Assembly: GCA_035084275.1 (NCBI GenBank)
Contig: CM068752.1
Coordinates: 13,020,001-13,084,000 of the forward strand
Direction of reading: 5' to 3'
DNA length: 64,000 nucleotides
From: Hydrolagus colliei
Lineage: Eukaryota
The position numbers and the translations under genes were made by a program. Positions 32,101 to 64,000 of this stretch are shown here, piece after piece. Position 1 is the stretch's first letter. Each line of letters starts with the position of its first letter. The notes under the pieces are model-generated. The model saw only the letters and a program-made list of their open reading frames with translations. It had not been told where the DNA came from and searched no databases.

Positions 32101-35100
32101 GGCGCTGGACAGTCACTGTGTCAGACCCAAGCTGGGGCCGGGGTGGGGAAGGAAAGGTGGGGATCAGGAGTTGCCAATGGAACCATTGAAGAGGAGAGTT
32201 TTGAGGCCGGAATTGAAGGAGGCCAGGGAGGGGGGCGAAGGGACTGCAGGATGGAGTTCCAGAGGCTGGGGGCAGAGTGGCTAAAGGCTCTCAATGGTGG
32301 GGCATTGGAATGCGTGATGTTTCCTGATCTCAGTGCAGTTGCTAACCCTTCCAAACGCTGTCTTATCGTGTTGCAGACCCTCCTGGGGGAGCTGAATCTG
32401 GGCAGCAAGACCAGCCAGGTGCCGTTCCTGTCGGTGTTGATGTCGTTGGAGGGCAAGGCCAGCCACCGGGAGCTGATGTCACAGCTGTTAGCTGATCTGA
32501 CGGGGAGACGATTGAAGGCAGAGCATGTGGCCACCGCCTTCGATAAACTCCTGCGCAATCTGCCTGACCTCATCCTGGACACGCCCGAGGCCCCCCAGGT
32601 ACGTGACAGTCTGTTCTTCGAGGAGAGATGTCCCGGAGGAGATGCGGAAGGCTGATTGCCGGGGTTAGAGGGATGAGCTATAAGGAACGAATGAATACAC
32701 CAGGTTCTTTGGCTTGAAAGGAAGGACATCTCAGAGGAAACCTTATGGAGATAGGTAGATGTAACACAGCTAGTTTAGGACAGAGACAGCAGTTAAGTGT
32801 TTCTTTACACAGAGCAAAATTAGTGTCATGTTATCAGTAGAGGATGTTCAGACCAGTGTGGGGGGAGATAGGAACAAAGCAAAAGGACAAAGGAGCAGTT
32901 GCCTTTGACTCTGCTTTATTCCTTTGTGAAACGCTGTGATCTTGTGCTGCAGATGCTGGGTCAGTTTGTAGCTCGAGCAGTGGCTGACCATGTCCTCACC
33001 ACTGAGTTCCTGGACAGCTATAAAGGGATGGTGGATTGTGAGCATGCCCGGTAAGTTCCTGCACAGTTCAATGAGCCACACGTCAGTGTTGCTTCGCGCA
33101 TCCCTCTGTACCCCTGTCGCATAATAACTCCCTTCACAAAAGACAATAAGAATACGTTGGCCACTTCCATCCACGACTGTTTGTGGGACACTACGGTGTT
33201 GCAACTGGCTGCCAGGTTTCACCCACAAACACAAGTCAATTTACATTACAGTAGATTCAGTGAAACGCTTCGAGACGTCTCAAAGAGGTGATACGGTGCG
33301 ATATCAAGTGCAAGGATTATTATTAATGACCATAATGATGCCGGCCTGGAACGGAGCTCCTTATGTGCTCTTAGACAGTTTTCTTGTCTCCGCCACCTGC
33401 CCCCACGGCTGACTACTGTAAACTGGACGTTGTAAAGCTACAGGCCTGACTTGTGTCCTTTGGTTGGTCACTGACAGCGCAGCGCTGGACCGAGCAGCCC
33501 TGCTGCTGAGCATCAATCGAGGAGTCCGTCTGGACAGTGTCTGGGGAGTTGGAGGTGGCCTCAGACCAGTCAAGCAGCTTGTTAAGGAGGTAAGGCAATG
33601 ATTGTGGAGCACTGGTCTGATCCGATCCAGTACAGCCAGACATTCACACACCTACAATAAATACACTATGTCCAGCTTTTGTGGAATATGTCACAAACAC
33701 AGTCCCCTGCCTCAACTTACAAAGGAAGTCAACATTTCTTTTCATCTTCATTCAAATTGGTCCATCCACCACCACCACCCCCACCCAATTCGAAATTAAT
33801 TAACTATTCATCTTTATATATATATATATATATATTTAATTGCTGCCTTTGCCTCAGTTGGTAATGCTCTCATCTCTGGGCCATTAGATCGTGGCTTTGA
33901 GTTCAGCTCTTAAGCTCCCTCTCTCTACCTCTGCCATTCTCCCAGCCGCCCCTTGCTCCAACCTCAACGCTTTATTTCCGCCCCTCCCCTCCTCCCCACA
34001 ACACTAATGACATTGCTCCCCTGTTTCAGTGGCTGATCCCTGAGCACTGAGACTAACACCAGATACTGTGGTTTCTAGTTACAATACAAAATTACATTCG
34101 TATAGTGCCTTTCATGTCAAGAGGACTCCTAAGGAGCTGGACAGTCAGGAATTCGACCCAAGCTGGGAGTTGGGATCGGGGAGGGTAGGATGGTGGCCAA
34201 AGGCATGGTTGACGAGGAGGGGCTTAAGTCATGCTTTGAAGGAGGCAAGGGAGGGAACCAAGGGATTGTGAGATGGAGTTCCAAAGGGTGGGGTAAAGAG
34301 GCTGAAGGCTTGACCATCGATGGTGAGCTGGGCCGGGTTGGGGACGTGGAGCAGGTGCTCAGCGAGGAGAGGTGGGGTGGGGTGGGAGCAGGTTGATATG
34401 AGTGAGTACAACATTTATCGTGGACTGTGTTTCACAGATGAATCTTCTGCTGAAGGAGTACCTGCTGTCCAAGGACACTGTGGAAGCTGAGCGGTGCCTG
34501 CAGGTTCTCGAGGTTCCACACTTCCACCATGAGCTCGTCTACGAGGTACATTGCGTTTTGCCCACAAAATATACAGTCAATTCACTTTACAGTATATTCT
34601 ATGAAGCGCTTTGAGACATCTAGAATACGTGAAAAGCACTATATCAAAATGGAAGGATTATTATTATTACATTGAGCTGCCCTTTTTACTGCTTATTTAT
34701 TTTGCTCTTTCTTGCCTTGACTGTATAATCCTTTCAAGCACCAATAACAATGTGACTCATTCTGGTGGCTTTCCCATTGCCCTTATGGGTTACCTCATAA
34801 TATGTAATCACCCTTGCACGTTATCATGTCATCGAGGGGTCTTCTAGTGCTTCACAGGATAAACTGGAGTGAAGTATTTTGTGGACAAATGTGGCAGCCA
34901 ATCTGCACAGTGGGTTGTAAAATAATCTACGTATTCATATTTATATAGTGAGAGGCCGTCCCAAGTGAAAGCTGCTCTGCTTGCTTCCCGATCGCTGACG
35001 TGTTTTGTTGCTCTCAGGCTGTCCAGATGGTGCTCGAGTCTTTGAATGACGATGCTTCTGATCTGATCGCCAAACTCTTGAAGATCTTCTGGGAGTCGGG

Positions 35101-38100: not shown

Positions 38101-41100
38101 CGCGCGATGCCCGGTACTGCCTTCCACCACCTCCGCAACATTGCCAGACTCCGCCACTGCCCCACCCCCCCATGCGGCCGAAACACTTGTCCATGCATTC
38201 ATCACATCAAGGCTCGACTACGGGAACTCTGTCCTCATCGGCCTTCCCAGCTCCTCCCTTCACAAGCTGCAGATTATTCAGTACACTGCAGCTTGTGTAC
38301 TCTCCAGCTCTAGGCTTCGCGATCACATCACTCCCACTCTCGCCCATCTCCATTGGCTCCCCATCCCCCAGTGAGGATCACCCTCACTTTCAAGGCCATT
38401 CACGGCCTTGCCCCCGCCTATCTCTCCGACTTGCTGTCTCCTTATCAGCCCTGCCTTCCCACTCTGTTCAGTGGTTTCTTGCCTGCTCCATATTCCCCGC
38501 CCCAACCGCCCTACCATCGGTGGCCGGGCTTTCAGCCTGTCTGTTCCCACACTCTGGAACTCCATCCCGCAATCGCTGCCTCGCTTCCTTCCTTTCCTCC
38601 TTCAAGGCCGGTCTCAAGACCTTCCTCTTCGACCGCGCCTTCTGCTGCCCTCCTAACTCTCCACTAGGGAACGACGATATATCGGTTTTTCGATTAAACC
38701 CGATATGATTTTCAGATCGGTATGCCGATATGGTGATTCTAAAAAAAACGTTATATCGAGAGATTCGATTTTAAAAATATACATCGTTATATTTTTAATA
38801 TCGTTCCTGGCAATATATCAATATTGTTGGTATTATCAGTGTAATGCGATCTTTTCCAGCTTACCTTGTCGCCGGCATTGCAACCTCCTAGACCTAGAGC
38901 ATGGAATGCGCCTACATTCGGTGCGCGCGCACAATTAACGGGCGCGCACATCCGATGCGCGCGCACACTTTACTGTGTATACTCGACGTGAGTCATGGCG
39001 TCTTAACAAAGTCGCATCGCTGAAAATTGTAGTTTGAAAATTTACCTTTCTCATCATGGGGAAAAGAAGCCCCGTCTGGGACTACTTTGAAAACAATGCA
39101 GTCAGTAATGGTGTGTATAGATGTACAGTTTGCAAGTTCTTGGTTAAGACATCTGATTCGAGCACGAGCAACCTGCGACATCACATTAAGCAGCACCACC
39201 CCGCCCAGCACGCTGCCCTCAGAGCGAAATCATTGTCGACAACAGCAGGAAGTCGAACCAGCGCTTCGGAGAAAGCGACAGGTAGTGGGGCCAGTGCAGC
39301 TCAAACAATTCCTGCTTTATTTAAGAGGAGAACATTGTACCAGAGAGGGGACAAAAAGTGGCAAAGTATCACGAACGCTGTCACTTTTTGCATAGCAAAG
39401 GAGAGCTTGCCAATGGCGAAGGACATTAATTCAGACTTCAGACTACATAAAAATAAGTGGCATTTTGTGGCTGTAAGTGTTATTGTTGTGTGTGAGAGAG
39501 TTAGAAGCCAGATTATCACTGCTGTGTGTGTCTGACTAGACACACACATAGAAACAGTGATAATCTGGCTTCTAACTCTAACAGTCAGACTGTCTGTCTC
39601 TCTCTTTTCTATTGTAATAGATCTCATTTACACGTGGACATTACATGCTAGTTTCAAGCAAGAAATGGAGGAGAATAAATCTCTAGATTTTGTTTTTGGT
39701 GTGTGTGTGTTCTATTTTGTGTTTAGAGATGGAGGGAGAGAAGGAGAGGTGGAAAGTTGGGAGAGGNNNNNNNNNNNNNNNNNNNNNNNNNNNNNNNNNN
39801 NNNNNNNNNNNNNNNNNNNNNNNNNNNNNNNNNNNNNNNNNNNNNNNNNNNNNNNNNNNNNNNNNNNNNNNNNNNNNNNNNNNNNNNNNNNNNNNNNNNN
39901 NNNNNNNNNNNNNNNNNNNNNNNNNNNNNNNNNNNNNNNNNNNNGAGGGAGAGAAGGAGCGAGGGGAAAGGAGGGAGAGAAGGAGAGAGGAGAGGGAGGG
40001 AGGGAGAGAAGGAGAGGGGGAAAGGAGGGAGAGAAGGAGCGAGGGGAAAGGAGGGAGAGAAGGAGAGAGGAGAGGGAGGGAGGGAGAGAAGGAGAGGGGG
40101 AAAGGAGGGAGAGAAGGAGCGAGGGGAAAGGAGGGAGAGAGGGAGNNNNNNNNNNNNNNNNNNNNNNNNNNNNNNNNNNNNNNNNNNNNNNNNNNNNNNN
40201 NNNNNNNNNNNNNNNNNNNNNNNNNNNNNNNNNNNNNNNNNNNNNNNNNNNNNNNNNNNNNNNNNNNNNNNNNNNNNNNNNNNNNNNNNNNNNNNNNNNN
40301 NNNNNNAGAAGGAGAGGGGAAAGGAGGGAGAGAAGAAGAGGGGGAGGTAGGGAGCAAACAACATCGTATAATTCAACAGACCTTGACACCAACATTACAA
40401 ACTTTCTGGACCTGGAGCACGCATTTTGAAATGTGTGTGCACCGCGACTGCGCGCGCACCGTCAGTGCGGACGCACCGTCAATGCGCGCGCACCGCGACT
40501 GAGCGCGCACCATAAATGCGCGTGCGCCATCAATGCATGCACACTTCGAATGCATGCGCATGCGCAGTATAAAAACTCGATAGATCGGTTTAAGCAGGTA
40601 TGAGCAAACCGATATATCCATATCCGGAAAAATCCCATATCGCCGTTCCCTACTCTCCACCCTTTCCTACCCTCCGCCCAACTGCCACTACCCCGATCCT
40701 CCTCCCCCCTGCTCGGGTCCCGACCTAACTGTTCAGCACCTTGGGACGTCCTGCCGACGTGAAAGGCGCTCTATAAATGTAATTTTGTTGTTGTTATGCC
40801 TCTCTAACTGTGTGTTTCTTTCTATCTCTGTACGTGTGCGTCTCTGTGCCTGACACAGTGATTGTCCATCGCCTTGGGACGTCCTCCACGTGAAAGGCGC
40901 TATATGAGTGTCATTTTGTTGTTGTGCCTCTCACTCTTTTTCCAAATATATATGTATGTATATGTGTGTGTCTCTAGAAATATGTGTGTGAGAAAGAGAG
41001 AGAGAGAGGCTCCCTGCAGGTTTATTAAGATTGTGATGCTGGAAGCCTTGCGTATCTGTGTGCCACAAACCAACTTCCTGATATTGCAGCCTGACCTGAC

Positions 41101-49331: not shown

Positions 49332-50216
49332 CAGGTAAACCTCTATTTAGGACGGGGTTGCGTTCCTGAAAAACGGTACTCCGATCGAAACATCCTAAAT
49401 CGAAACGCGGTTTCCCATGCAGTCCCATTATATAACCCGAGATATTTTTCACAAAATGTTCAGACCTTATATCCACTAAATAACATACAAAACACACAAA
49501 ATAACATGCATAGTCAATATGGGGTGCTTGGGGTAATTGTACAGTATTGTACTTTAATACTAGCAAACTTTAACACAGTCCTATGTTTTGATAATCTGCT
49601 TGCACCTGTAGCTGTAATATACCTTGAACTTGCCAGTATATTGTCCTTATTCTGTTTTATAGTAGCCACCGTCGATCTAAAGCCCTCCCGACGTCTGTAC
49701 CTTTTTTGCCAGACTTGTGCGCTTTATCACCTCCAATTTAGTATTTCAAGTGATGATTTGTGGGGTTTCTGGCCTCTAGCGGTATTACCGCTTCTCATTT
49801 CACTTACTGGTCTCTTTTCTGACATTGTAGAAATGCGATAGAGGCTGTAAATCACTTGAAATTGCTGGGGAATTTTCGGAAATACAGTAATACTGACCAC
49901 GCGTGCTGTTGTTTCAAAATCAGCTGCTTTTAAACAATGACGTAGCGACATGCTACTGGCCAGTTCAAACGCTTGGATACACTATACCAGGTGCGAGCAT
50001 GATTTACCTGCGAATACACGATGTACTGTGCGTATGGACAAAAAGGATGCGGCAAAAACGACCGCGATATTCAAAATACATACTGCCCATGCACAGAAAA
50101 GAATGTTGTTCGTTAAAATGAAACCAAGTGTCCATATCGATAAAAAGGTATTAAAAAATGATGTTCGTTCAATCAAAATGTCCTAAATGGAAGTGTCCTA
50201 AATCGAGGCTTACCTG
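49332..50216 (-). mobile_element. Tigger deletion derivative ending ~97 bp before the Siglec-like leader exon
   Basis: CAGGTAAACCTCTATTTAGGAC ... GTCCTAAATCGAGGCTTACCTG; homologous to 42651-43516 and 53247-54705. Confidence 0.85.
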
Positions 50217-50327
50217 TGTATATAGGTGTGTATGGGCTGATTGTCCACGGCCCATCATGCAGGTATCAATGTGTCTGATTGTTTTCCGCTCTTCTCTCCA
50301 CGTTCTCTCCAGGCTGTGATCCACACA

Positions 50328-50379
50328 ATGAGTGCCTCTCACTGCATCCTGGCACTGCAGTTGGTGTGTCTCATCCAGG
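50328..50379 (+). CDS. Siglec-like signal-peptide exon (MSASHCILALQLVCLIQ)
   Basis: Acceptor ctccag at 50312, ATG at 50328, hydrophobic leader, donor G|gtaagg, phase 1. Confidence 0.8.
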
Positions 50380-53300
50380 GTAAGGCTTCACCCTTTACCA
50401 CCATTATCTCTGAGCTATAGATCAATGGTAATCACTAACTATATGTGTGAGCTTTTCACAGGGACCCTTTGTCACCAAGGAACAATGGGCTTTGATCCTC
50501 TTTCCCACAGGGTGAGATTCTGGTCAGGTGAGACACAATAATAATTTCTCTCGCTGCCCTCATGCCGGGTAGTGTCTCAGAGTGCTAGACGGTGGTGGAG
50601 CACAACACAGAGACGGGGGATGAGATAGCAGCCATAGGCAGGTTCGAAGTGGAAGGTCTTCTGGTGCGATCTGAAGAGGCAAAGGAAGGAACAAGGTGGA
50701 GGGATATAGGAAGAGTGTTCCAGAGGTTTGGGGTGGTAATGCACTGGCTTAATGGTGGAACCATTACCCATCTCCCACATGCAACATGTGGGAGATGGAG
50801 CCAGCTGGTAATGGGTTGGAGAGTAAGCAGTTCAGACACTTTGAGAGGTGGCAGGGCATGAAGAGATTTGAAAACAAGTGCGAGGATCTTGAAGTTGTTT
50901 GGCGATATAGGGTGAGTGAAGCTTTGCTAGAACTGGTGCAATGGGTGTATGGAGTTTAGTGCAGGGTTGCAATATGTGGTAACCACATAATGTTGTACTT
51001 GTGTAAATATGAGGACCCAGAACATTTTAGTTCATGGTGTTGAAGGCGTGTCTGCAGCTTCATGTCTTATTGATGAGCCAAATAAACTGTTTAACTTGGT
51101 TTTCTCTGGAGTTGCTTATCGTATCAGAATAAATTCCGCCTCAGGGACATCTCTCCTCTTCCCCACCTCTGGTTCTGAGGACATAATTTGAAACATATAA
51201 TAATAATCCATGCATTTGATATAGCACCTTCCATTTCTTCTGGACGTCTCAAAGCGCTTCACAGATTATACTGTAAAGTGAATTGACTGTATATTTGTGG
51301 GTGAAACGTGGCAGCCATTTACGCACAGCAGTGTCCAACAAACAGTCATGAATTCAGTGACCAAATTTTTTTTTTGGTAAGGATTAGTATTAGGTGTGTG
51401 GCGCAAGGAAACTTGCCCAATATTTCACCCTACCAAGAATTAAACTCAGGTTTCCCATATAACACAATACCGTACAAAACTATAATTGTATAGCACCTTT
51501 CACATCAAATACAGGTACCCCACCCTAACCTCGTCAACCGCGAAACTCACGCATCCATGGTTTGGTAAATGTGACAACCCTTGCAAACCACGGCTTATAA
51601 CCCTTGCTTATCTACGGGTTTTAACACTAACACTCGTGTTTCGCGCTAGGACCCAGTTGCATCAACCAGCCTCATTGTCGCTTCGCGCTAGCGAGCACAA
51701 GAACCCAGTTGTGATGTCGCAATCAACCAGCGACAACGCTTCTCTCTTAGGATTAAGATAAATACAGTAACATGAATTTATTGTCGCTTCTCCGCAGCCT
51801 AGCTAGTAAGTTTGGGAGCATTGACTGCCAGGATCTGCAGATCTCTCTCTCTCTGTAAGTGTATCGTAGGCTGTAGAAGTCTTTCTCTGTATCTCAGGCT
51901 GAAGAGGGATCTTTCTTTCTCTCTCTCTCTCTCTCTCTCTGTGAGTGCATCTTGGACTTTAGAAAGGTTTCTCTCTCACCTTCTCTCTATTTCATCTTCT
52001 CTTCCCCCCACTCCCCGTCCCCCACCCCACCCTCTTCCCCCCACCCCCACCCCCACTCCCCCACCTCTTCCCAACCCCCGCTTCTCTCTCTCACCTTCTC
52101 TCTCTCTCTCTCTCTTCTCTGTCTGTGTGTAGATCAGTCAATCAGTCAGATAGCCTCGCGGATTGCTGCAGATGCACCCAAACTTACTCCCCCTATCCCC
52201 ATGTATGTTATAACTGTATGTGTTTTTTTTGTGTTTAGTTCTGCGAAACGCAAACTTACTCCCCGTATCCCCATGTTTCCCATGGGGCCTTGCATTTTCC
52301 AACCGCGAAAAAACAAACTTACCCCCGCCTATCCCCATGCTTGCTGTAGGGCCCTGTATTTTCCAACTGCGGTTTTACCAAACACGGAGGTTTACAGGAA
52401 CGTATCCCCCATGGTTGGGGAAGGATACCTGTATTACTCAAGTTATGGTTAAAAACTAAGTGAGTTGCAGTGATTCAATCCAGATACTTCTCAGCCCAAG
52501 TTAATTGATTGAGCTACTTGAAACATGTTTTGGGGATTCCGCCTGACACTAGCAGAAACTCATCACCACACCAGTTAGCACTTTAGCTTGCACTGATAAT
52601 AGGAGCTGAGTGGAATGACTCCCTGCCCCCAGTAACTGGTCTGCTCTTCCAAGTCTTGTCAATGAGCCAGACTGGCTGTGCTATCATCAGCAGCCCCTCA
52701 AATACTATGGACTCATCTGGCTCAAGAGCTGGACTTATGAGACCACCATTAAATGATGGTTCATATCTGTAAATGATGGCTCATATCTGTAAATGATGGC
52801 TCATATCTGTACATGATGGCTCATTTAATTGCCAAACAGACCCTTTTACCATCGCCCCACCCCCTGCCCCCCTCTCCCCTCCCCCTTAAAAGAGGATAAT
52901 CACTAGTTGGTCATTCCACACTGACTAGAGCAGGTTTGAGCTCTGACTAAGTGGATTGCAGATACCCACTGTGAGCCACACATCTCAGCTCGAATTATCG
53001 TATTCATGGGGTGGGGAAGGAGGTGATTGTAAGAGGGGTGTCATGTCCTGCCCATGTGTCTGCTCCCCTTCACGGTTGTTGTGTTGCTGTTCCACAATTC
53101 CTGTGTTATGGTGGAATGTCAGGCTTCTGGCAACTTAAATACATTTTGTGTAACTTTACATATTGGCGTAAGTCATGCTGAGGTTTCCAAATCTTTGCAA
53201 AGAAGTGGACAGTACAGAAAGTTACCACCCTGTCAGGTATTACATACAGGCAAGCTCTATTTAGGACGCTTCTATTTAGGACGTTTCGATTGAAGGAACA

Positions 53301-56300
53301 TAATTTTTTAACACCTTTTGATAGGACACCTGGGTTCATTTTAACGAACACATTTTTTTTTGCGCATGCGCAGTACATAGTTTGAATATCGTGGCTGCAT
53401 TTCCGCGTCCTTTGTATCCATACACACAGTCCATAGTGTATTGGCGGGTAAATCCAAACGTTTGAACTGGCCAATAGCATGTCGCTAAGTCATTGTTTAA
53501 AAGCAGCTGATTTTGAAGTGACACCACGCCACGTCAGTATTACAGTAATTTCCAAACATTACCAAGCAACTTCGATCGATTTACAGCCTCTACTGCGATT
53601 CTACCATGTCGGGAGTAGACAGCAGTAAGTGAAATGAGCAGCGGTATTACAGCTGGTGGCAACAGACAAGTCATCACTTTAAATACTAAAGTGGAGGTGA
53701 TAAAGCTCATCGCGACTGGTGAAAAAGGTACAGACGTCGGGAGGGCTTTAGGACTAGCTAGATCGACGGTGGCTACTATAACAACAACAACAACAAATTA
53801 CATTTATAGAGCGCCTTTCACGTCGGGAGGACGTCCCAAGGCGCTGCACAGGAGGCGTGTGACCCGAGCTGAGAGGGGAGTGTTTGGGAAGGGGTGAAAC
53901 ACGAAGGGGAGGTCGAAGAGTTCGGGGTGGAACAAAAGGCACGGTCGAAGAGGAAAGTCTTCAAACCGGCCTTGAAAGAGGAAAGGGAAGAAACGAAATG
54001 GAGGGATTGAGGGATGGCATTCCATAGGGTGGGAGCGGAGAAACTGAAGGCCCGGCCTCCGATGGTGGGGCGGTTCGGGCAGAATAAGGACAATATTCTG
54101 GTTCAAGGTGTGTTACAGCTACAGGTGCAAGCAGATTATCAAAACATAGGAGTGATGTGATGGAAAACATGGAAAGAATGCTGATTGTCTGGATTGAAGA
54201 TCAGATCCAGCGTAATATACCACTCAACATCCTGGTTATCCAAGAGAAAGCAAAATAATTGTTTAGGGAGTTAAATGATCAGAAAGGAGAAGGCTCAACG
54301 GCACCATCTTTCAGTGCTGGCAGAGGGTGGTTTCAAAGGATTAAAATACACTGTGGGCTCCACAACATCAAGATGAGTGGGAAAGCTGCAAGTGCCACTG
54401 TCACTGTCACACTACCAGTATTAAAGTTTGCCAGTAGTGTACTGTATTAAAGTTTGCCAGTATTAAAGTACAATACTGTACAGTTACCCCAAGTACACCT
54501 TCTTGCCTATGTGTGTTAATTTGTGTGTTATGTTGTGTATTCTTGTGTGTTATTTAGTGGGTTTAAGGTGTGAAAATTTTGTGAAAAGAACGCATCTCTG
54601 GTTATATAATGGGACTGCATGGGAAATTGTGTTTCTATTTAGGACATTTTGATGTAGATACAGTTTTTCAGGAACACAACCCCGTCCTAAATAGAGGTTT
54701 ACCTGTATTATTATTATCCCCTGTTAATCAGTAATGGAGTCACATTCAGTCACTCAGTCTGTCTGTCTGTTTCCTCTTCCACAGCTTCTACCGATGATTG
54801 GGGAGTCTCACATCCCAGGTCTGCTGCTGGGTTGGAGGGAGAGTCCGTGATTCTGAAATGTTCATTCAAACACCCTGACCCACCAAATGCACAATATAAT
54901 ATAATCAGCAAATTGTTCAAAGGTACTGCATGCAGTCCATACTCCTTGCTGTCCACGCAGTTGGTGTATAAAAGCAGCCAGCCCCAAAGATACAACAGAA
55001 TAAAATTAACAGGAAATCTGAAAAATAAAAACTGCTCAACTGAGATAAACAACCTCAATAAAGCTGATTCTGGTGACTATTGCTTCAGGTTTGAGATCCA
55101 GGATTTCGATAGTTGGACCGGACAACATCCCATCAATGTCGTGGTGTATGGTAAATATTCCTTCTCACTTCTTGTTACATATTTGACAAACCAGCAGACA
55201 GACAGACAAGTTTGCAGGTGTTTTTATCCAGTATTTACAGGTGCCAATTTTGACCAGGTGCCAATTTTGAACATTGTTTATTTCTGTTTCCTTTTGTTAG
55301 GTCGTCCTGGCAACCCCAATGTCCTCCCAAGTGAAGTGACTGAGGGGATCAGCACCACTTTATCATGTTCCTCCTCTAACATTGATGATCAGGCCAGAGC
55401 CAAGCTGACCTGGGAAGGAATCACTGAGCTGACAAAGCAGGAAACCGTGACTGAGGAAAAACAGTCTGTATCTAACCGGGTCCTCACCAGTTCATTCACT
55501 TTTATCCCCTCATACAGAGATCATCTCAAGCTGATCAAATGTGTGGTCAGTTCTCCAAACTACCAATATTCCAAACAAGGCAACATAACACTTCAGGTAA
55601 AATGTAAGTTATCCATACTGAAGCAGCGTTCAAATGATCCCAAACTGTACAGAAAGTTCTCAAGAGGTTTTGTATTGGCTCTGTTCTACCACCTGACCTG
55701 CCTTTGCCCCTGTTTACCAGTACATGCTTTGACTGAATACCCTCAGGGATATGTCTGACTAGGTGGATGGTAGATACTCAGCTAGAGCCACACATCTCAG
55801 CAGGAATTATTGTAGTGGCCACTGGTACCTCAGGGAGGAGGCTCGAGGTGATGATGTCAACCCACTGACTGGGGCTGGACTCTCCTGATGGTCAGAGCCA
55901 GTGTGGGGGGGGTGGGGGGGTGATTGTAAGAGGGGTGTCATGTCCTGCCCATGTGTCTGCTCCCCTTCACGGTTGTTGTGTTGCTGTTCCACAATTCCTG
56001 TGTTATGGTGGAATGTCAGGCTTCTGGCAACTTAAATACATTTTGTGTAACTTTACATCGTAGCGTATCTCATGCTAAGGTTTCCAAATCTTTGTAAAGA
56101 AGTGGACAGTGCAGAAAGTTACGACCCTGTCATGTATTACATACATCAAGTTCTATTTAGGACATTTCAATCAAAGGAACCTAATTTTAACACCTTTTGA
56201 TTGATATAGGACACTTGGATTTATTTTAATGAACAATTTTTTTTTCTGCGCAGTAGGTATTTTGAACATCATGGTCGCATTTCCGCATCCTTTTGGTCCA

Positions 56301-59300
56301 TATGCACAATACATAGTGTATTCGCGGGTAAATCATGCTCGCACCTGATATAGTGTATCCAAGCGTTTGAACTGGCCAATGACATGTCGCTACGTCAATG
56401 TTTAAAAGCAGCTGATTGTGAAGCGACACCACGCCAGATCAGAATTACTGTATTTCCAAACATTCCCGAGCAACTTCGAGCGATTTAGTACTGCGATTCT
56501 AGCATGTCAGGAGTAGACAGCACTCCTGTAGCAAGCAAATTATGAAAACATAGGAGTGATGTGATGGAAAACATGGAAAGAATGCTGATTGTCTGGATTG
56601 ATGATCAGAACCAGCGTAATATACCACTCAACACCCTGGTTATCCAAGAGAAGGCAAAATCATTGTTTAGGGAGTTAAATGATCAGGAAGGAGAAGGCTC
56701 AACGGCACCATCTTTCAGTGCTAGCAGAGGGTGGCTTCAAAGGTTTAAAAGATGCTGTGGGCTCCACAACATCAAGATGAGTGGGAAAGCTGCAAGTGCC
56801 ACTGTCACTGTCACACTGCCAGTATTAAAGTTTGCCAGTAGTGTACTGTATTAAAGTTTGCTATTATTAAAGTACGATACTGTACAGTTACCCCAAGTAC
56901 ACCGTCTTGCCTATGTGTGTTAATTTGTGTGTTATGTCGTGTATTCTTGTGTGTTATTTAGTGGGTTTAAGGTGTGAAAATTTTGTGAAAAGAACGCATC
57001 TCTGGTTATATAATGGGACTGCATGGGAAATTGCGTTTCTATTTAGGACATTTTGATCTAGATACAGTTTTTCAGGAACACAACCCCGTCCTAAATAGAG
57101 GTTTACCTGTATTATTATTATTATTATTATCGCCTGTTACTCAGTAATGGAGTCACATTCAGTCACTCAGTCTGTCTGTCTGTTTCCTCTTCCACAGCTT
57201 ATGCCGATGATTGGGGAGTCTCGCTTCCCAGGTCTGCTGCTGAGCGAGAGGGAAAGCCTGTGATTCTGAAATGTTCATTCAAACACCCTGACCCACCGAA
57301 TGCACAATATAATATAATCGGCAAATGGTTCAAAGGTTCTCCATGCAATTCTCAAGCGAAGTTGGTATATAAAAGCAGCCAGCCCCAAAGATACAATAGA
57401 ATAAAATTAACAGGAAATCTGAAAAATAAAAACTGCTCAACTGAGATAAACAACCTCAATAAAACTGATTCTGGTGACTATTGCTTCAGGTTTGAGATAC
57501 AGGGTTTCAGAAGTTGGACCGGACAACATCCCATCAATGTCATGGTGTATGGTAAATATTCCTTCTCACTTCTTGTTACATATTTGACAAACCAGCAGAC
57601 TGACAGACAAGTTTGCTGGTGTTTTTATCCAGTATTTACAGGTTCCAATTTTGACCAGGTGCCAATTTTGAACATTGTTTATTTCTGTTTCCTTTTGTTA
57701 GGTCGTCCTGGCAACCCCAATGTCCTCCCAAGTGAAGTGACTGAGGGGATCAGCACCACTTTATCATGTTCCTCCTCTAACATTGATGATCAGGTCAGAG
57801 CCAAGTTGACCTGGGAAGGAATCACTGAGCTGACAAAGCAGGAAACCGTGACTGAGGAAAAACAGTCTGTATCTAACCGGGTCCTCACCAGTTCATTCAC
57901 TTTTATCCCCTCATACAGAGATCATCTCAAGCTGATCAAATGTGTGGTCAGTTCTCCAAACTACCAATATTCCAAACAAGGCAACATAACACTTCAGGTA
58001 AAATGTAAGTTATCCATACTGAAGCAGCGTTCAAATGATCCCAAACTGTACAGACAGTTCTCAAGAGGTTTTGTATTGGCTCCATTCTACCACTTGACCT
58101 GCCTTTGCCCCTGTTTTCCAGTAAATGCCTGCTTTGGATCCAATTCCCTCAGGGATACTGGGCAGCAACATTTTCTTCCCAATGCAACCCTGTAAACTGG
58201 AGGGACTGAACATGCCCAGGAGGAAGCTGGAAGTGTTCAGGCTTGAGAGGATGACACAGAGAGTGTGAATGATGGGTTAAACCAGTCATTGGGGACGGCC
58301 ATTTTGTCCGGCCTAAGACACTCCCGAGGTTAACCACAATAACTGCCCAGTGAAGGAGTGGCACAGACTCCATCCCATTGACATTGGAAGGGAGGGCGAC
58401 TTATTAGTGGTGGCGCTGAGATGATTCAGGAAGAACAGACATTTTACACTCTTGTTTTTTTTAAAAGCTAGAAACCTCTTTAGGGACAGTAAAATGTTAT
58501 TGTGCTCATTTGAAACGCAAAATGCAATCAAAGATGGTGTGATGGTTTTGTCTGAAAAAAGAACCCAAAACAATATTTTAGGATTTACCAAGATGGTAGA
58601 ATATAATAATAATCCTTACATTTGATATTATGCCTGATCACTTTGTTCAGAAGTCTGTAAGTGCTTCACAGAATATATTCTACAATGGATGACTGTGTAT
58701 TTTGCAGTCTAAACGCACCAACCAATTCCACAGCAGTGTCCCGCAAACAGTTTTGGATTGAGTAGCCAAATTGTTATTTTTGGAAGTGATTATTACGCTC
58801 AGAAAGAACAATAGAATATAGGTTTTGAATTATAAAGGGCAATTGGATAATAATAGTCAGAAATTATCTGGGAGTATTCATAGCCACTGCTCCCTTTACC
58901 TGAGCCTTTAGGAGGTGAGCTCCTCCGTCCATCTCCATCACAAGCCTGCAATCTAGGATACACTATCAGAGAATCATAGAATGTTACGGCACAGAAGGAG
59001 GCCATTCAGCCCATCGAGTCTGTGCCGGCTCTTTGACCGAGCAAGTCACTTTTGTTAACCTACCAGTGGAAGATAGAGGTAGAGAAGGGAGTGAGATAGG
59101 AATTGTGAGCTTGGCACAGTGACAGTCTGGTACAAGACAAAAAGAGACACAAACACAACAGAAACTCTCAAAAGTACAGACAGCATCCTGTTGTTCAGAA
59201 CAATATCCAGAAAGGATTCAGGAATCTTTACCTGCGTGGTAAATAATTCACAGGGAAATGATACCTTTGCAGCTGACATCAATGTCATGTGTAAGTATTT

Positions 59301-62300
59301 GACTTTAACGGTTCCTGAGTGGATTATACCATGTTAGAGTGAGAGTTCAATTTGACTGGTCATGAGGCACATCAATAGATCACTGTCACTTGCTAAACTG
59401 TTCAAAATTAAGATTTGTCTACAGTCATCTTCCCAATGATTTCTTGAGTGTAATGTCTTTCAAATTCTCTCTTCCCCAATCCAGCAAGCACTCTTACTCT
59501 TTGTCTCCAGGTGTCTCTTGTGATTGGTCTAAGGAGAGGAGGGAAATGGTTAAAAATCAGGGAAATGTGAAAAATGGGATTTAAATATTTGTTAATTCCC
59601 ACTTACAGATGGACCCAGTGAAGTTAACGTTAGTCACGATGGGCTGAATTACAAGTGTGTCACGGATGCCAACCCTCCAGCAAACATCATTTGGAAACTA
59701 ACTGAATTCAAGACTAACAGAACAACCCAAATCGATGATACTAAGTCTATGAGCAGCCTGGCTATGCATGAATTAGAAGGCTTGTGTGTTTCCTGTCGAG
59801 CTGAGAATAAATATGGTCGTGCACATTCAGAAGCTTACTGCAAACCAAAGCCAAACCAGAGTAAGTAACTTTTCAGAGCTTTTTATCAATCAAGTTAATT
59901 GAACTGCAACAAAAATTATGTAGGTATGTATAATGTATGTATAATATACAATATACTGTATTTAACTGGGCATGAAGCACATCAATAGATCACTGTCACT
60001 TGCTAAACTGCACAAAGTTAAGATTTGTCTAGAGTCATCTTTCCAATGAATTCTTGGGTCTAATGTGTCACAAATTCTCCCTTCCCCAATCCAACAAACA
60101 TCATATCTAGTTGTCTCCATGTGTCTTTGTGGCTCGATTGTTAGCAATCTTGTTCCGGGGTCAGAATGTATGGATTTCATATTATTATTTTAGTTCACAT
60201 TTATGATTGTCAAATCTAGTAATTGCTTTTGCAGACAACCTCAGTGACCATTTTGTACTCATCAAGTTCCCATCAATTGCCCAAAGGGCGACCAACGTAT
60301 CTGGAAGATTATTGGAGTGACACTTCCATCTCCCTTCCAAAAGTGCACACATTCCATTCCAGATACCAGGAAGTTTCCATGGGTAGGAGGAGGCATGCGT
60401 GTGTAGGACTCTCATCTGGGTTAGATAGTAAACATGGAGATGAGTTTTCACATGTGTCAGACACCTGGCTGATCAGAAATAATTTGCGCTTTGGGCAACG
60501 AAAACCATTGACTCCAGTTCACAAAGGAAATCACATCAGTGGTCGCTCCTTATCCCTCACATGGAAGGTGCATCAATAGTAACCTGATGACCTGGACGTT
60601 GGCCATTTTATGCATTTTTGTTATAATATATTTGCCAAGGTTATCAAACTCAGAAGATTGTGTTAATACAATGCTGCCTCATATTAATCTGTAATATATA
60701 TACAGTATATACAATAATCCATAGAATCTTATTGCTAAACAGCTTTGATATAAATACGTTGATCAGAAATATTTGAATATTCATTTTGCAGGTTGGTCAG
60801 CAATATTGCTATTCATGTCTGTCAAAGTCATCTTTGTCCTTCTCTTGATGGTAGCTTGCTGTGTAAAATTCCTAAACCAAAGTAAGTTCTGTCAATCTCT
60901 CTTCTGTGCCAATGTTGTAGTTCCCAGTCCAATATCAGATAAAACCCACACAAACACACTCACTGCACTTCAATTCTGCTCAACCAATGTGGCAGCTCAG
61001 CTTACATTGAGACCTCAGTAATAAACCTCATAATTATTGATAATAATAATCCTTACATTTGTTATAGCTGCCGACAATGTGGGCACTTTTCCCAGTAACA
61101 ATATTATGCCAGAACAAAGTGCAGAATCATCCAAATGAATTGCAGTGATATTTTACTTTCTTGCACGTTGCTTTGTTCCTAGTGCATGGTCAATCTTAAA
61201 CAAAAAGTATCAATCATTTTGTTTTGTATTCCATCAGCGAAACAGATGAAAAATAATTCCCAAGCCGTGGTGATCCATGAATTTCCAACTTCCATTCAGG
61301 TATATTCAGGTCATTTTAATTGTTAAAGAATTGAGGTGGATTCCCTCTCTCAGTGGCTCAGAGTGAAATGCACTGTTTGGTCTATCATAATAATAATCCT
61401 TGCATTTGATATAGCGCTTTTCATATCTTCTAGATGTCTCAAAGCGCTTCACAGAATATACAGAGTGAAATATCAGAGCGAATTGACTGTCACTGAGTCA
61501 AGAGAAAGTCACCCCTTTCCTGTGTTTCCTTGCCATCTGTGATGAATTAGCTGATGTCAGAAGAGCCTTGAGTGGGGAACTCTGATTGTCCTAAGGACTG
61601 GCACGACAATATAATAATTTGCTGTATGTGCCAGGTTTTTTGATAAGCTCTGGCGCTCATTAACGCAAGTGTCCCTTGAGGCTAGATTAGTACAATTTTA
61701 CAGAAGGGAAGTAGATAAGCATCTGAGCAAAGAAAATGTTAAGGGAGAAATAGCTATAAAGTGGGAATAATTTTCAAAACGGGGCAATTTAGAAAAAAGA
61801 GGTAGCGGTGTGACAAGGTTTCAGAGTGCTCAACATGCCTTCTTCATACTTCCCTGTGTAGAAAGATTGTAATTATTATGCTGTTGGCAGGATAACCGGG
61901 TCATTGAGGAGGACAACAATCCCCAGGAAGAGTTTGAGTATGAAAATTGCAAGGTTGGATCGGCATCAGCTCGGGAGGAGCCTGGAGACAATTGGCTGCA
62001 TGATTCCCCCATCCCCAACAAGCGAAAGCATTGTAAAGCAGCCAAACTAAATGAAGAAAGCTTTGTATCGTAACAGAAAGGTGAATCAACAACAACTTGC
62101 TGTCCTTCAATATAGCACGCTTTATGTGGGGCAGTGTCTCAGAGCGCTTAACAGTGACAAAGCCTGGCAATGAGCTTGGGGAGGAAGGATGAGGTGACTA
62201 TAAGCACGGTCAAAGAGGAAGGTCTTCTGTCATGATCTAAAAAGGGGGTGGGAGGGGGCAAGGCATTGGAGAGTTCCAAAGCTTTGGGTGTAAGTGGCTG

Positions 62301-62771
62301 AAAGTGCAGCTGCTGATTCAGAAGGGACGAGCAGGTGGCTAGAGCCAGCCGATCGGAGGCAGCGGGTGGTGGAGTGCAGAGAAAGCAGGTCAGAAAGGTG
62401 AGGAGGTGCCAGAGTGGTGAAGGGATTTATAGAGCAGTGCTAGGATTTTGAAAAGGATCTGTTCTCTGATAGTGAGCCAATGGAGCCTGGCGAGGACTGA
62501 CGTGATGAAGGAATGAGCTTGTGGATAGTGGCGCTGCGGAGACTGATGAGTAGAGTATTGGAATAGTCGATCAGGAGGTGACATCACATCTACATAAATT
62601 CTAACAATCACTCTTTTATGATCAACCAGCTGAGCCAGGGGAGCACTGCATGCAAAAGGAACAAACCCATCTCAGAATGCTGACAGGAAGTTTACTAAAC
62701 AGCCAGAGTCAATGAAACCAGCAGGAGATGATTCAGAACAAATTACTTATTGCAATTTGCAGATAAAATAA
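50328..62771 (+). CDS. Siglec/sialoadhesin-like Ig receptor with duplicated V-C2 cassette, TM lysine and ITIM tail (spliced)
   Basis: Leader 50328-50379; V1 54785-55150; C2a 55301-55603; V2 57198-57551; C2b 57702-58004; damaged Ig exon ~59096-59290; Ig 59609-59860; TM 60792-60881; cytoplasmic 61238-61299, 61891-61953 and ~62676-62771. All extracellular exons are phase 1. V motifs WGVS.P, C-S-F, NCS..I, DSG.YCFRFEI..W resemble the Siglec-1 V-set (WGVSSP...DSGTYNFRFEI...RW, from memory). Confidence 0.85.
51512..52431. mobile_element. Tigger-type MITE with subterminal direct repeats and CT-rich core
   Basis: TA|CAGGTACCCCACCCTAACC ... GGTTGGGGAAGGATACCTG|TA; three aaacttac(t)cccc..tatccccatg units at ~52170-52340; a solo end of this family lies at ~29861-29892. 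Confidence 0.8.
52751..52824. repeat. 20-bp tandem repeat, ~3.7 copies
   Basis: aaatgatggctcatatctgt units. Confidence 0.9.
53247..54705 (+). mobile_element. Tigger deletion derivative (HTH psq and CENP-B HTH, no DDE) interrupted by an L2 3' end
   Basis: TA-flanked CAGG..CTATTTAGGAC TIRs; peptides RQVITLNTKVEVIKLIATGEK and MERMLIVWIEDQ...RGWFQR; L2 insert at ~53781-54080. Confidence 0.88.
54785..55150 (+). CDS. Siglec-like V-set exon, copy 1
   Basis: ccacag|CTTCTACC...GTGTATG|gtaaat; 366 nt open; YCFRFEIQDFDSW. Confidence 0.88.
55301..55603 (+). CDS. Siglec-like C2-set exon, copy 1
   Basis: tgttag|GTCGTC...GTAAAAT|gtaagt; 303 nt; LSCSS..LTWEG..IKCVV. Confidence 0.88.
56144..57109 (+). mobile_element. 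Duplicated Tigger remnant with an additional ~500-bp internal deletion
   Basis: MERMLIVWIDDQNQRNIPL...ASRGWLQRFK; lacks the psq part and the L2 insert seen in unit 1; right TIR intact. Confidence 0.85.
57198..57551 (+). CDS. Siglec-like V-set exon, copy 2
   Basis: ccacag|CTTATGCC...GTGTATG|gtaaat; 354 nt open; IIGKWFKG, YCFRFEIQGFRSW. Confidence 0.9.
57702..58004 (+). CDS. Siglec-like C2-set exon, copy 2
   Basis: 303 nt; differs from copy 1 at 2 nt. Confidence 0.9.
59071..59290 (+). pseudogene. 5'-damaged Ig exon of the Siglec-like gene
   Basis: Frame gives NCELGTVTVWYK...DSGIFTCVVNNSQG...INVM with a good donor (T|gtaagt). There is an in-frame TGA at 59092, no polypyrimidine acceptor, and a CR1 fragment directly upstream. 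Confidence 0.6.
59351..60119 (+). repeat. ~160-bp diverged direct repeats (59351-59509 / 59961-60119) flanking an Ig exon
   Basis: Shared gcacatcaatagatcactgtcacttgctaaactg...aagatttgtcta...caaattctc...cttccccaatcca. Confidence 0.85.
59609..59860 (+). CDS. Siglec-like membrane-proximal Ig exon
   Basis: ttacag|ATGGAC...AACCAGA|gtaagt; 252 nt; YKCVTDANPPANIIW...VSCRAENKYG. Confidence 0.88.
60792..60881 (+). CDS. Siglec-like transmembrane exon with central Lys
   Basis: ttgcag|GTTGG...AACCAAA|gtaagt; WSAILLFMSVKVIFVLLLMVACCVKFLNQ. Confidence 0.88.
61238..61299 (+). CDS. Putative cytoplasmic exon 1 (TKQMKNNSQAVVIHEFPTSIQ)
   Basis: Strong acceptor ttttgttttgtattccatcag, donor CAG|gtatat; phase 1 in, phase 0 out. 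Confidence 0.6.
61891..61953 (+). CDS. Putative cytoplasmic exon 2 (DNRVIEEDNNPQEEFEYENCK)
   Basis: ttggcag acceptor, phase 0, acidic stretch and a YEN motif. The donor (AAG|gttgga) is weak; read-through stops at 62073. Confidence 0.55.
62676..62771 (+). CDS. Putative last exon with ITIM (…DDSEQITYCNLQIK*)
   Basis: Open frame 62634-62771 ending in I-T-Y-C-N-L (62742-62759), then TAA and AATAAA at 62777. The acceptor is uncertain (62675 phase 0, or 62638 phase 2). Confidence 0.55.
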   Translation, partial: NADRKFTKQPESMKPAGDDSEQITYCNLQIK

Positions 62772-64000
62772 GCTTGAATAAAACAGGTTATTTTATGCTT
62801 TCATGAAACTGATTATTTTCCATGATTAACTCCGATGGCAATGACTTGATTTGTTGCTGGCAGCAAAGTTACTGCTTACAGCGTTCCATTCTAATGATGA
62901 TGATAGAAAAAAAGCTTTGCTTCTTTATAGCTTCTGTAATGTCAAAACACAATTAATAACAATATTAATCCTTGCATTTGATATAACGCTTTACATATCT
63001 TCTAGACATCTCAAAGCGCTTCACTGAATATTCTGTAAAGTGAAAGGACTATATTTTGTGCGCGAGAGAAAGGAGAAAGGAAAAATAAATGGTATTAAAA
63101 GATCTGGCATGATCTACTAGATAGCAACAACTTGCATTTATATAGAGCCCTCCATTACAGGGTAGTGACTCGGAATCCTGCTGAACCTATGGAACATTCA
63201 CTCTGAATGACGCACCTGTTTCTACTAACAGTGCACTTGATACAAAAGTCCCGAACATGTCAGAGCAGAGAATTTTGCATGGTGCCAAGATCAGTGACAT
63301 GCTTTTATTAATGTGGGTTGGGGTGGGGGCAGGGGGGTGGGGAGTGTGGTTGGGGAGGAGGGAATCCCTTTCCTGATCAGCAGAATGTCACCCTACCGAC
63401 TGAGTTAAGGAACAATAACATTGATGCTTGGCAAACAGCAGCCACCAGACTAACCACGGAGTAGCAACTTTGTTTATTGTACCTACATGGAGATATTGAG
63501 TCATTGGGAAAGGCATTGTTCACTTACACTGGAAAAAATGAAGGAAGCTCAAAAGAAGATATTACTCAAATCTATACAATTGCAAAGAAATGATAACTAA
63601 TGTTAACCATTAATGTGAGCAAGAAAGGAAATCATTTTTACATTACAACAGTTCTTAGCAGAAAATGTCATTTTAAAAAGCACTTTAATTAGCTAAATTA
63701 TTTCCGCTTTGATATAGTGACAATGCTTTTCGGTGTCTTTGTTGTATGATCGAATATATAACATTGACATTAAATATGTTTTACATGCAGATCATCATCC
63801 CATTTTTGATTGTGTTATTAATTTACTGCTTTAGTTCTTCTGCTTGGTGATTCAGCCATTTTTTGCTAATTCAAAGTAAAGTGGAGTTTTCCTCCTGGTT
63901 ATCCTGATTTATATTCATCCAAACTTTGCCATATTTAAATGAATAGCCTGTTGCTCTTCATAGTTCCGCCAATTTACAATTAATTGTCTGAAGTACTTTG

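Follow-up and report, generated by a model that had tools for sequence, protein, structure and literature searches.

In B7-H3 (CD276), the tandem duplication of a pair of exons for immunoglobulin (Ig) domains, IgV and IgC, within one gene underlies a 2Ig and a 4Ig isoform (PMC3172298). In the Siglec family, Siglec-12 (Siglec-XII) has two V-set domains, which are arranged V-V (PMC6288428). Here we describe a Siglec-like gene of Hydrolagus colliei in which two complete V-C2 exon pairs stand between a single leader exon and a single transmembrane exon. It lies on the plus strand of a stretch of 64,000 nucleotides (assembly GCA_035084275.1, contig CM068752.1, positions 13,020,001 to 13,084,000), which we refer to as the window. 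We favour, with moderate confidence, a young, lineage-specific tandem duplication in a holocephalan, inside a fast-evolving Siglec gene of the CD22/MAG/sialoadhesin type, with a V-C2-V-C2 receptor as its default product. That a real duplication sits within one gene is very probable; that the V-C2-V-C2 receptor is the main product, as splice sites and exon phases would predict, is on balance probable.

The closest parallel in architecture is 4Ig-B7-H3. In both cases adjacent V and C exons were copied as one unit inside one gene with breakpoints in introns, one leader and one transmembrane exon serve a V-C-V-C ectodomain, the duplication is confined to particular lineages, and single-pair and double-pair products are both compatible with the reading frame. 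The two differ in that B7-H3 is a B7 ligand whereas the present gene belongs to a lectin family of the Siglec type, and in that the B7-H3 isoforms have been shown experimentally whereas those of the present gene are predicted from sequence. Unlike B7-H3, it also has two V copies that diverged at the presumed sugar-binding site. With Siglec-12 and the predicted ‘Siglec-8/-12-like’ proteins of catshark and stingray (XP_038670873.1, XP_059815055.1) it shares the presence of more than one V-set domain per polypeptide through exon duplication. Those proteins are built as V-V(-V)-C2, in contrast to the alternating V-C2-V-C2 order found here.

The original prediction had presented this arrangement as a candidate for an undescribed system, which overstates its novelty. 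Similar proteins were sought with the second V-C2 unit (V2-C2b) in an exhaustive profile-free search, and domains were mapped among the best 150 matches. Many predicted Siglec-like proteins found in this way carry the whole V-C2 unit at internal positions. Alternating models are seen in the caecilian Rhinatrema (XP_029433169.1, V-C-V-C-V-C) and in the teleosts Paramormyrops (XP_072564550.1, seven units) and Engraulis (XP_063065482.1, about ten units), the teleost models being termed ‘sialoadhesin-like’, while the catshark and stingray models map as V-V-V-C. These three models resemble the window gene in that V domains of the CD22 type and C2/I-set domains follow each other in alternation within one predicted protein, and all three rank in the best 150 matches to the V-C2 unit; their identity to that unit is only 26-31%, and they represent independent expansions in other classes. 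The alternating models are automated gene predictions, and since the caecilian gene spans 190 kb it may be chimeric. Because (V-C2)n Siglec-like proteins are predicted in teleosts and a caecilian, the alternating architecture is not new, and the B7-H3 precedent (PMC3172298) points the same way. Exon-pair duplication is an ordinary route by which Ig-receptor genes grow, and no new class of mechanism is involved. A literature search on Siglecs in cartilaginous fish, on Siglecs with several V domains or V-C2 repeats and on DAP12 in cartilaginous fish returned nothing directly relevant.

The gene belongs to a chondrichthyan family of Siglecs of the CD22/MAG/sialoadhesin type. The proteins closest to it are chondrichthyan models annotated as MAG-like, SMP-like, CD22-like or Siglec-13/-14, with members in Callorhinchus milii (XP_042196016.1), Heterodontus, Cetorhinus, Scyliorhinus, Mobula and Hemiscyllium. 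These relatives share the exon order leader, V, C2, third Ig exon (D3), membrane-proximal Ig-like exon (Cx), transmembrane and cytoplasmic exons, and their V-C2 identity to the window gene is 38-66%. Tandem duplication of Ig exons is frequent among them; unlike in the window gene, it involves the third domain (one to four copies) and in no case the V-C2 pair. Several motifs of the immunoreceptor tyrosine-based inhibitory motif (ITIM) type are present in their tails, and their membrane spans have no lysine. In the basking shark Cetorhinus maximus (OZ077456.1), the third Ig exon is tandem-duplicated (80871-81155 and 82265-82533 of the extracted locus, L002) and the second copy is frameshifted.

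Sequence comparison of the V-C2 unit with solved structures returned CD22 domains 1-2 (2.7e-13), MAG (3.6e-11) and sialoadhesin (4.5e-11). An AlphaFold model of V1-C2a reached a predicted local distance difference test (pLDDT) score of 88, and its top 20 Foldseek matches are all Siglecs (MAG, CD33, Siglec-10 and CD22). The layout is that of a Siglec: a signal peptide, an N-terminal V-set domain followed by a C2-set domain, and a transmembrane exon. Together, Pfam matches, structure matches and exon anatomy bear out the earlier view of a single Siglec-like gene with two intact V-C2 exon pairs.

Sialoadhesin contacts sialic acid through R97 and through W2 and W106, aromatic residues of the A and G strands, and equivalents of all three residues are present in both V1 and V2 (W6, R98 and W107 in V2 numbering). 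The motif YCFRFE, present in both copies, corresponds in the alignment to YNFRFE of sialoadhesin and to the arginines R120 of CD22 and R118 of MAG, and this F-strand arginine is invariant in 14 of 14 family sequences. The cysteines of strands B and E, in ILKCSF and KNCSTEI, align with those of sialoadhesin, CD22 and CD33; C26 and C84 are likewise invariant in the 14 family sequences, the B-E disulfide itself being only predicted. The C2 exon holds two cysteines only, without the third one of an inter-domain disulfide. Two additional cysteines in the V domains (PC in the C-C' loop and YC before the arginine) are specific to the family and may pair with each other.

We rebuilt the whole gene on the plus strand from a re-reading of 50-64 kb of the window (Table 1). 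The exon coordinates, open frames, intact splice sites and 1/1 phases that had been claimed for the two pairs all hold. Each of the four exons V1, C2a, V2 and C2b is stop-free, begins and ends in phase 1 and has a length divisible by three. Between the two pairs, the 20 nucleotides before each acceptor and the 8 nucleotides after each donor are identical, and all sites are GT-AG and of the U2 type. The introns between V and C2 (55151-55300 and 57552-57701) are each exactly 150 nucleotides long and have no in-frame stop, so that their retention would add 50 residues without breaking the frame.

Table 1. Coordinates of the Siglec-like gene, its tandem repeat and associated elements in the window
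Feature	Position	Strand	Remarks
Promoter-proximal conserved block and leader exon region	50241..50419	+	Single copy in the window
Leader (signal peptide) exon	50328..50379	+	Starts with ATG, encodes MSASHCILALQLVCLIQ, donor AGG/gtaagg, ends in phase 1
Duplication unit 1	53007..55750	+	Intron-1 sequence, Tigger-like element, V1, 150-nt intron, C2a, ~150 bp downstream
Non-autonomous pogo/Tigger-like DNA transposon	53247..54705	+	Terminal inverted repeats CAGG(C/T)AA..TCTATTTAGGACG; CENP-B_N and HTH_Tnp_Tc5 fragments
V1, Siglec-type V-set exon	54785..55150	+	366 nt, phase 1/1; Pfam V-set 3e-9, Ig_CD22 2.5e-8
C2a, first C2-set exon	55301..55603	+	303 nt, phase 1/1; Pfam C2-set_2; aligns to domain 2 of CD22/MAG
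Duplication unit 2	55904..58158	+	Content as unit 1, with V2 and C2b
V2, second V-set exon	57198..57551	+	354 nt, phase 1/1; Pfam V-set 2e-9, Ig_CD22 3e-9
C2b, second C2-set exon copy	57702..58004	+	Versus C2a, 2 nt differences and 1 amino-acid difference
Remnant of third Ig exon (D3)	59128..59290	+	3' part only, donor intact; Pfam ig/I-set matches
Cx, membrane-proximal Ig-like exon	59609..59860	+	252 nt, phase 1/1; intact
Transmembrane exon	60792..60881	+	SWSAILLFMSVKVIFVLLLMVACCVKFLNQ; lysine inside the span
Cytoplasmic exon 1	61238..61299	+	(T)KQMKNNSQAVVIHEFPTSIQ, phase 1 to 0; 80% amino-acid identity to C. milii, both splice sites conserved
Last coding exon	62630..62683	+	LSQGSTACKRNKPISEC, then stop; read from conserved acceptor aaccag (62629/62630); no tyrosine
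ITYCNL, relic of distal ITIM-like motif	62742..62759	+	In frame only via weak cryptic acceptor 62675/62676
AATAAA polyadenylation signal	62777..62782	+	Conserved in C. milii (sequence and alignment)

Only one leader and only one transmembrane exon serve both pairs, as had been proposed. The leader peptide is kept across the chondrichthyan family, for example as MSASHCMLALLLACLIQG and MSTSHCTLALIAVCLIQG, and the block around it shares 88-89% identity with leader regions in two family genes of C. milii (loci L001 and L003), against about 78% in introns. A second leader or promoter block, which would have given the second pair a start of its own, was looked for with tblastn and blastn using the leader peptide and the block of the window gene and the two C. 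milii blocks, and none was found elsewhere in the window. A de novo scan between the pairs for an ATG, a hydrophobic stretch and a phase-1 donor agrees with this result; it returned weak chance candidates only, the best of which is part of the repeat and hence also present upstream of the first pair.

The two pairs sit in a true head-to-tail direct repeat with a unit size of about 2.4-2.8 kb, as resolved through repeat families D1-D4 and D6 and a subsequent MAFFT alignment with per-segment identities. Identity ranges from 89 to 99% by segment, far above chance. Upstream of V it amounts to 89% (53015-53600), 94% (54110-54484) and 98% (the last 300 nucleotides of the intron before V); from V onward it is 91% in the V exon (86.6% in its first half), 98% in the V-C2 intron, 99.3% in C2 and 92% downstream. 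The repeat ends on the left within intron 1 and on the right about 150 bp past the C2 exon, which confirms that the duplication breakpoints are intronic.

The age of this event can be approached through C. milii. Its locus MU249844.1:14051381-14075212 (L003) aligns collinearly with the window, starting at the leader and continuing past the 3' end into the downstream flank, with a nucleotide identity of 74-89% overall, 89% in the leader and 74-83% in introns. Both window pairs align to one single V-C2 pair in this ortholog, and one pair is also what is found in the C. milii paralog (L001) and in the basking-shark gene. Since two pairs map to one, the alignments place the duplication in the window lineage, after the split from Callorhinchus. 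Noncoding divergence amounts to 2-11% between the units and to about 22% between the two species.

Each unit includes a Tigger-like element. In unit 1 it stops about 80 bp before the V1 acceptor, and the unit-2 copy lies at ~56144-57109. Upstream of V, the homology to C. milii sets in only at 54717, right where the element of unit 1 ends; from this boundary we infer that the element was first inserted in the window lineage and was later copied along with the exons. A third copy, at 49502-50217, is inverted, and 24 bp separate its end from the conserved promoter/leader block.

In the history that we propose, a segment of ~2.4-2.8 kb with the Tigger-like element, the V exon, the 150-nucleotide intron and the first C2 exon was copied head-to-tail after the Callorhinchus split. 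Phase-1 symmetric exons, identical splice sites and ordinary long introns let one expect that all Ig exons are included by default, and the spliceosome would then join leader-V1-C2-V2-C2-Cx-TM (TM, transmembrane) into a product of 611 amino acids by the conserved splice sites. This would be a five-domain receptor whose two lectin-type domains stand at unequal distances from the membrane. Skipping of a pair would keep the frame, and such isoforms may occur, as with 2Ig and 4Ig B7-H3. In the same lineage the third Ig exon has died, the membrane span has gained a lysine and frameshifting deletions have truncated the ITIM tail exon.

How the two pairs have diverged speaks for the use of both. The V exon is the most diverged part of the repeat, with 32 mismatches in 354 positions (9%) against 9 in 450 in the flanking introns (p=7e-6), whereas the C2 exon has 2 mismatches in 303 positions compared to 4.4% in noncoding sequence (p=9e-4). 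Between V1 and V2 there are 19 amino-acid replacements and a four-residue insertion in V1. The replacements are concentrated in three segments, namely the beginning of strand A, the C-C' loop and the F-G segment (11 of 33 positions, against 8 of 84 elsewhere; p=0.004), which form the sugar-binding face in the sialoadhesin alignment, and the insertion, 12 nucleotides in the C-C' loop, also falls within these segments. As the three segments were picked after the data had been seen, this enrichment is no more than suggestive. When the changes are polarised against C. milii, 16 derived ones and the insertion fall in V1 and 12 in V2, so both copies have changed. The contact residues kept in both V domains, the divergence mainly at the predicted binding face and the near-identity of C2 suggest use of both pairs and, if the two sites bind sugar, a difference in fine specificity between them.

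The part of the gene between the second pair and the 3' end has changed as well. Compared to the D3 exon of C. milii, a deletion of about 180 nucleotides took the acceptor and the first ~116 nucleotides of the exon, and only the remnant listed in Table 1 is left. Reading 59067-59290 as a frameshifted whole exon was rejected on this alignment. The following exon, Cx, had correctly been assigned to the gene and is intact, while the dead Ig remnant before it had been missed. Cx is homologous to the ‘YKPxEVNIS...CVSCxAxNKxG’ region of all family members, and its GT donor is intact, unlike that of C. milii. In C. milii itself, the D3 exon is independently damaged by a 24-nucleotide deletion and a Cys to Tyr change.

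In the transmembrane exon, a GGA to AAA change relative to C. milii replaces a glycine by a lysine within the span, and in-frame deletions of 12 and 6 nucleotides make it six residues shorter. The acceptor of the last coding exon and the 3' end of its intron are conserved with C. milii. Within this exon, compared to its counterpart (L003 18690-18888), a 22-nucleotide deletion at the start and a 1-nucleotide deletion further on shift the frame, and a 36-nucleotide deletion removed the proximal canonical ITIM (LVYASI in C. milii). Read by the conserved splice sites, the tail runs ...EFPTSIQLSQGSTACKRNKPISEC to a stop at 62683 and holds no tyrosine. The gene had been thought to end at 62771 by way of ITYCNL, which is out of frame from the conserved acceptor, and a common signalling tail for all products is doubtful in view of the frameshifted exon and the lost ITIM. 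A first model of the tail had placed a ‘cy2’ exon at 61891-61953, or alternatively ending at 62073, and had relied on the cryptic acceptor 62676 to bring ITYCNL into frame; it was dropped because ‘cy2’ has no counterpart in C. milii and the acceptor at 62629/30 is conserved. The open frame at 61891-62073 (DNRVIEEDNNPQEEFEYENCK...) has a good acceptor, the look of a cytoplasmic exon and a faint likeness to the ‘VYENV’ region of sharks, and it is absent from the C. milii locus.

The tail is thus probably short and free of ITIMs. A membrane-span lysine combined with a truncated tail typically marks an activating-type receptor that derives from an inhibitory one, and Siglec-14, Siglec-16 and the activating killer-cell Ig-like receptors (KIRs) are paired receptors of this kind. 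Like them, the present gene has a basic residue in its span (LLFMSVKVIFVLL) and a short tail that lost its ITIM by truncation. With the lysine gained and the ITIM exon frameshifted, the receptor would more likely be adaptor-coupled or tail-less than inhibitory. The lesions of the tail could equally be decay.

Several observations weigh against a working receptor with two divergent binding sites. V1 alone among the 14 family sequences has a leucine in place of the C-strand tryptophan that is invariant in the other 13, and it could on that account be a decaying or always-skipped exon. The ratio of nonsynonymous to synonymous substitution rates (dN/dS) between V1 and V2 is 0.58 and so below 1, and synonymous divergence in the V exon is 0.14 against 0.02 in the introns on either side (p=2e-4). 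The C. milii ortholog has a 1-nucleotide deletion in its Cx exon and has lost the GT donor there (L003 13655-13940); in that assembly it looks like a pseudogene. Its NCBI model, XP_042196016.1, is partial. The D3 remnant and the frameshifts in the tail are signs of decay elsewhere in the window gene, and the whole locus might be on its way out.

Given the dN/dS value and the raised synonymous divergence, simple positive selection as the sole cause of the V differences is unsupported. Import by gene conversion from a paralog was considered and rejected, since the derived states match the C. milii paralog in only 6 of 28 cases; no donor was found in the comparison with that paralog. A mosaic history, in which introns and C2 were homogenised while V was held different, fits the alignment best and is not proven.

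Taken further, the same observations lead to an alternative in which the duplication is real and the gene, or one of its pairs, is non-functional with frames that are not yet broken. This is unlikely, though it is the reading that fares best next to our own. Besides the dead D3 exon, the frameshifting deletions and lost ITIM in the tail, the missing tryptophan of V1 and the broken C. milii ortholog, a dN/dS of 0.8-1.0 against C. milii in V would agree with it. Against it stand 1782 nucleotides over eight exons without stops or frameshifts, and all splice sites are intact. All six indels in the ectodomain and membrane span relative to C. milii are multiples of three (6, 12, 9, 3, 12 and 6), which argues that selection still acts on both ectodomain and membrane anchor. 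Conservation is higher in the promoter/leader block than in introns, the two C2 exons resemble each other far more closely than noncoding sequence does, and the lysine with a truncated tail is also a classic sign of an inhibitory receptor turned activating.

The original prediction had proposed a small cassette-choice system for glycan recognition; in a regulated form of it, V1-C2 or V2-C2 would be used according to cell type or stimulus, with two glycan specificities offered on one stalk and tail. The three splice products on which the proposal was built do stay in frame: translations of the leader-V1-C2-V2-C2 product and of both single-pair products are all open. Either pair could be skipped, the leader would join either V domain to give near-identical mature N-termini, and V1 and V2 are distinct at the predicted binding face while their C2 partners are nearly identical. 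Isoforms that differ by one duplicated Ig exon are annotated in shark members of the family; in Heterodontus they carry one or two copies of the third Ig exon. Mutually exclusive exons are well known from the Dscam1 exon clusters and from FGFR2 IIIb/IIIc. The present gene resembles these in having tandemly duplicated alternative coding units, yet it shows none of the features that enforce the use of one unit out of several.

This can be spelled out for each known mechanism. As the Ig exon lengths are multiples of three, neither the inclusion of both pairs nor the skipping of one carries a frame penalty or a penalty through nonsense-mediated decay. The intron between C2a and V2 is 1594 nucleotides long, so there is no steric block, and no incompatible spliceosome types occur between the pairs, whose GT-AG sites are the same in both. 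A search for inverted repeats of at least 40 nucleotides found no docking or selector RNA pairing within the transcribed region; the only such repeats pair the units with the transposon copy at 49502-50055, which lies upstream of the leader and is probably not transcribed. With nothing to enforce or bias a choice, joint inclusion of both pairs is the null expectation, and regulated choice is distinctly improbable. Its more specific form, in which leader to V1-C2a to Cx and leader to V2-C2b to Cx alternate across leukocyte types or states to give two glycan specificities on a lysine-bearing, adaptor-coupled stalk, is a shade less probable again. If true, it would be a minimal single-locus lectin-choice system, made within the last tens of millions of years.

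Very unlikely, too, is an assembly artefact that placed two divergent haplotypes of a single V-C2 region one after the other. The units are adjacent and similar, and immune loci can carry very divergent alleles. Against this stand a junction of unique sequence with no gap or N run at or near it; no N run occurs within 9 kb of the repeat, the nearest ending at 40306. The noncoding divergence between the units, an extra ~490 bp in unit 1 at 53.6-54.1 kb together with several smaller indels, and the separate sets of derived substitutions in each unit relative to C. milii (16 against 12) also speak against misplaced alleles. A unit of 2.4-2.9 kb is, moreover, shorter than ordinary long reads. Two transcription units, with the second pair forming a separate gene that has its own promoter and leader and shares the downstream exons, are least credible of all, since the hydrophobic ATG-started open reading frame with a phase-1 GT at 55951-56014 that could serve such a gene lies within the duplicated unit (with a copy upstream of pair 1 at 53054-53117), has a weak donor (AAT/GTCAGG) and no similarity to the leader conserved from sharks to chimaeras, and the conserved promoter/leader block is present once.

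The reading of a duplicated, jointly included V-C2 pair makes this locus a useful case in several respects. If both V domains bind sialic acids, a basal jawed vertebrate would here possess a naturally occurring Siglec with tandem lectin domains. The origin of the duplication is dated by absence from the Callorhinchus ortholog, and the locus may help to understand how Siglec ectodomains gain binding sites, how a duplicated V domain drifts at the binding face while its C2 partners stay the same, and how an inhibitory receptor may become ITIM-less.

Elsewhere in the window, a plus-strand open frame with an MA3 domain (Pfam 6e-7) is found at 32020-32655; since the C. milii ortholog likewise has an MA3-domain gene just upstream, the neighbourhood is syntenic. 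An open frame with a zf-BED domain (hAT-type) is present in two near-identical copies, 7322-8789 and 39056-40429, about 31.7 kb apart. Each copy is followed by a low-complexity stretch rich in Gly, Glu and Arg, and these stretches hold N runs at 8507-8684, 39767-39944 and 40146-40306.

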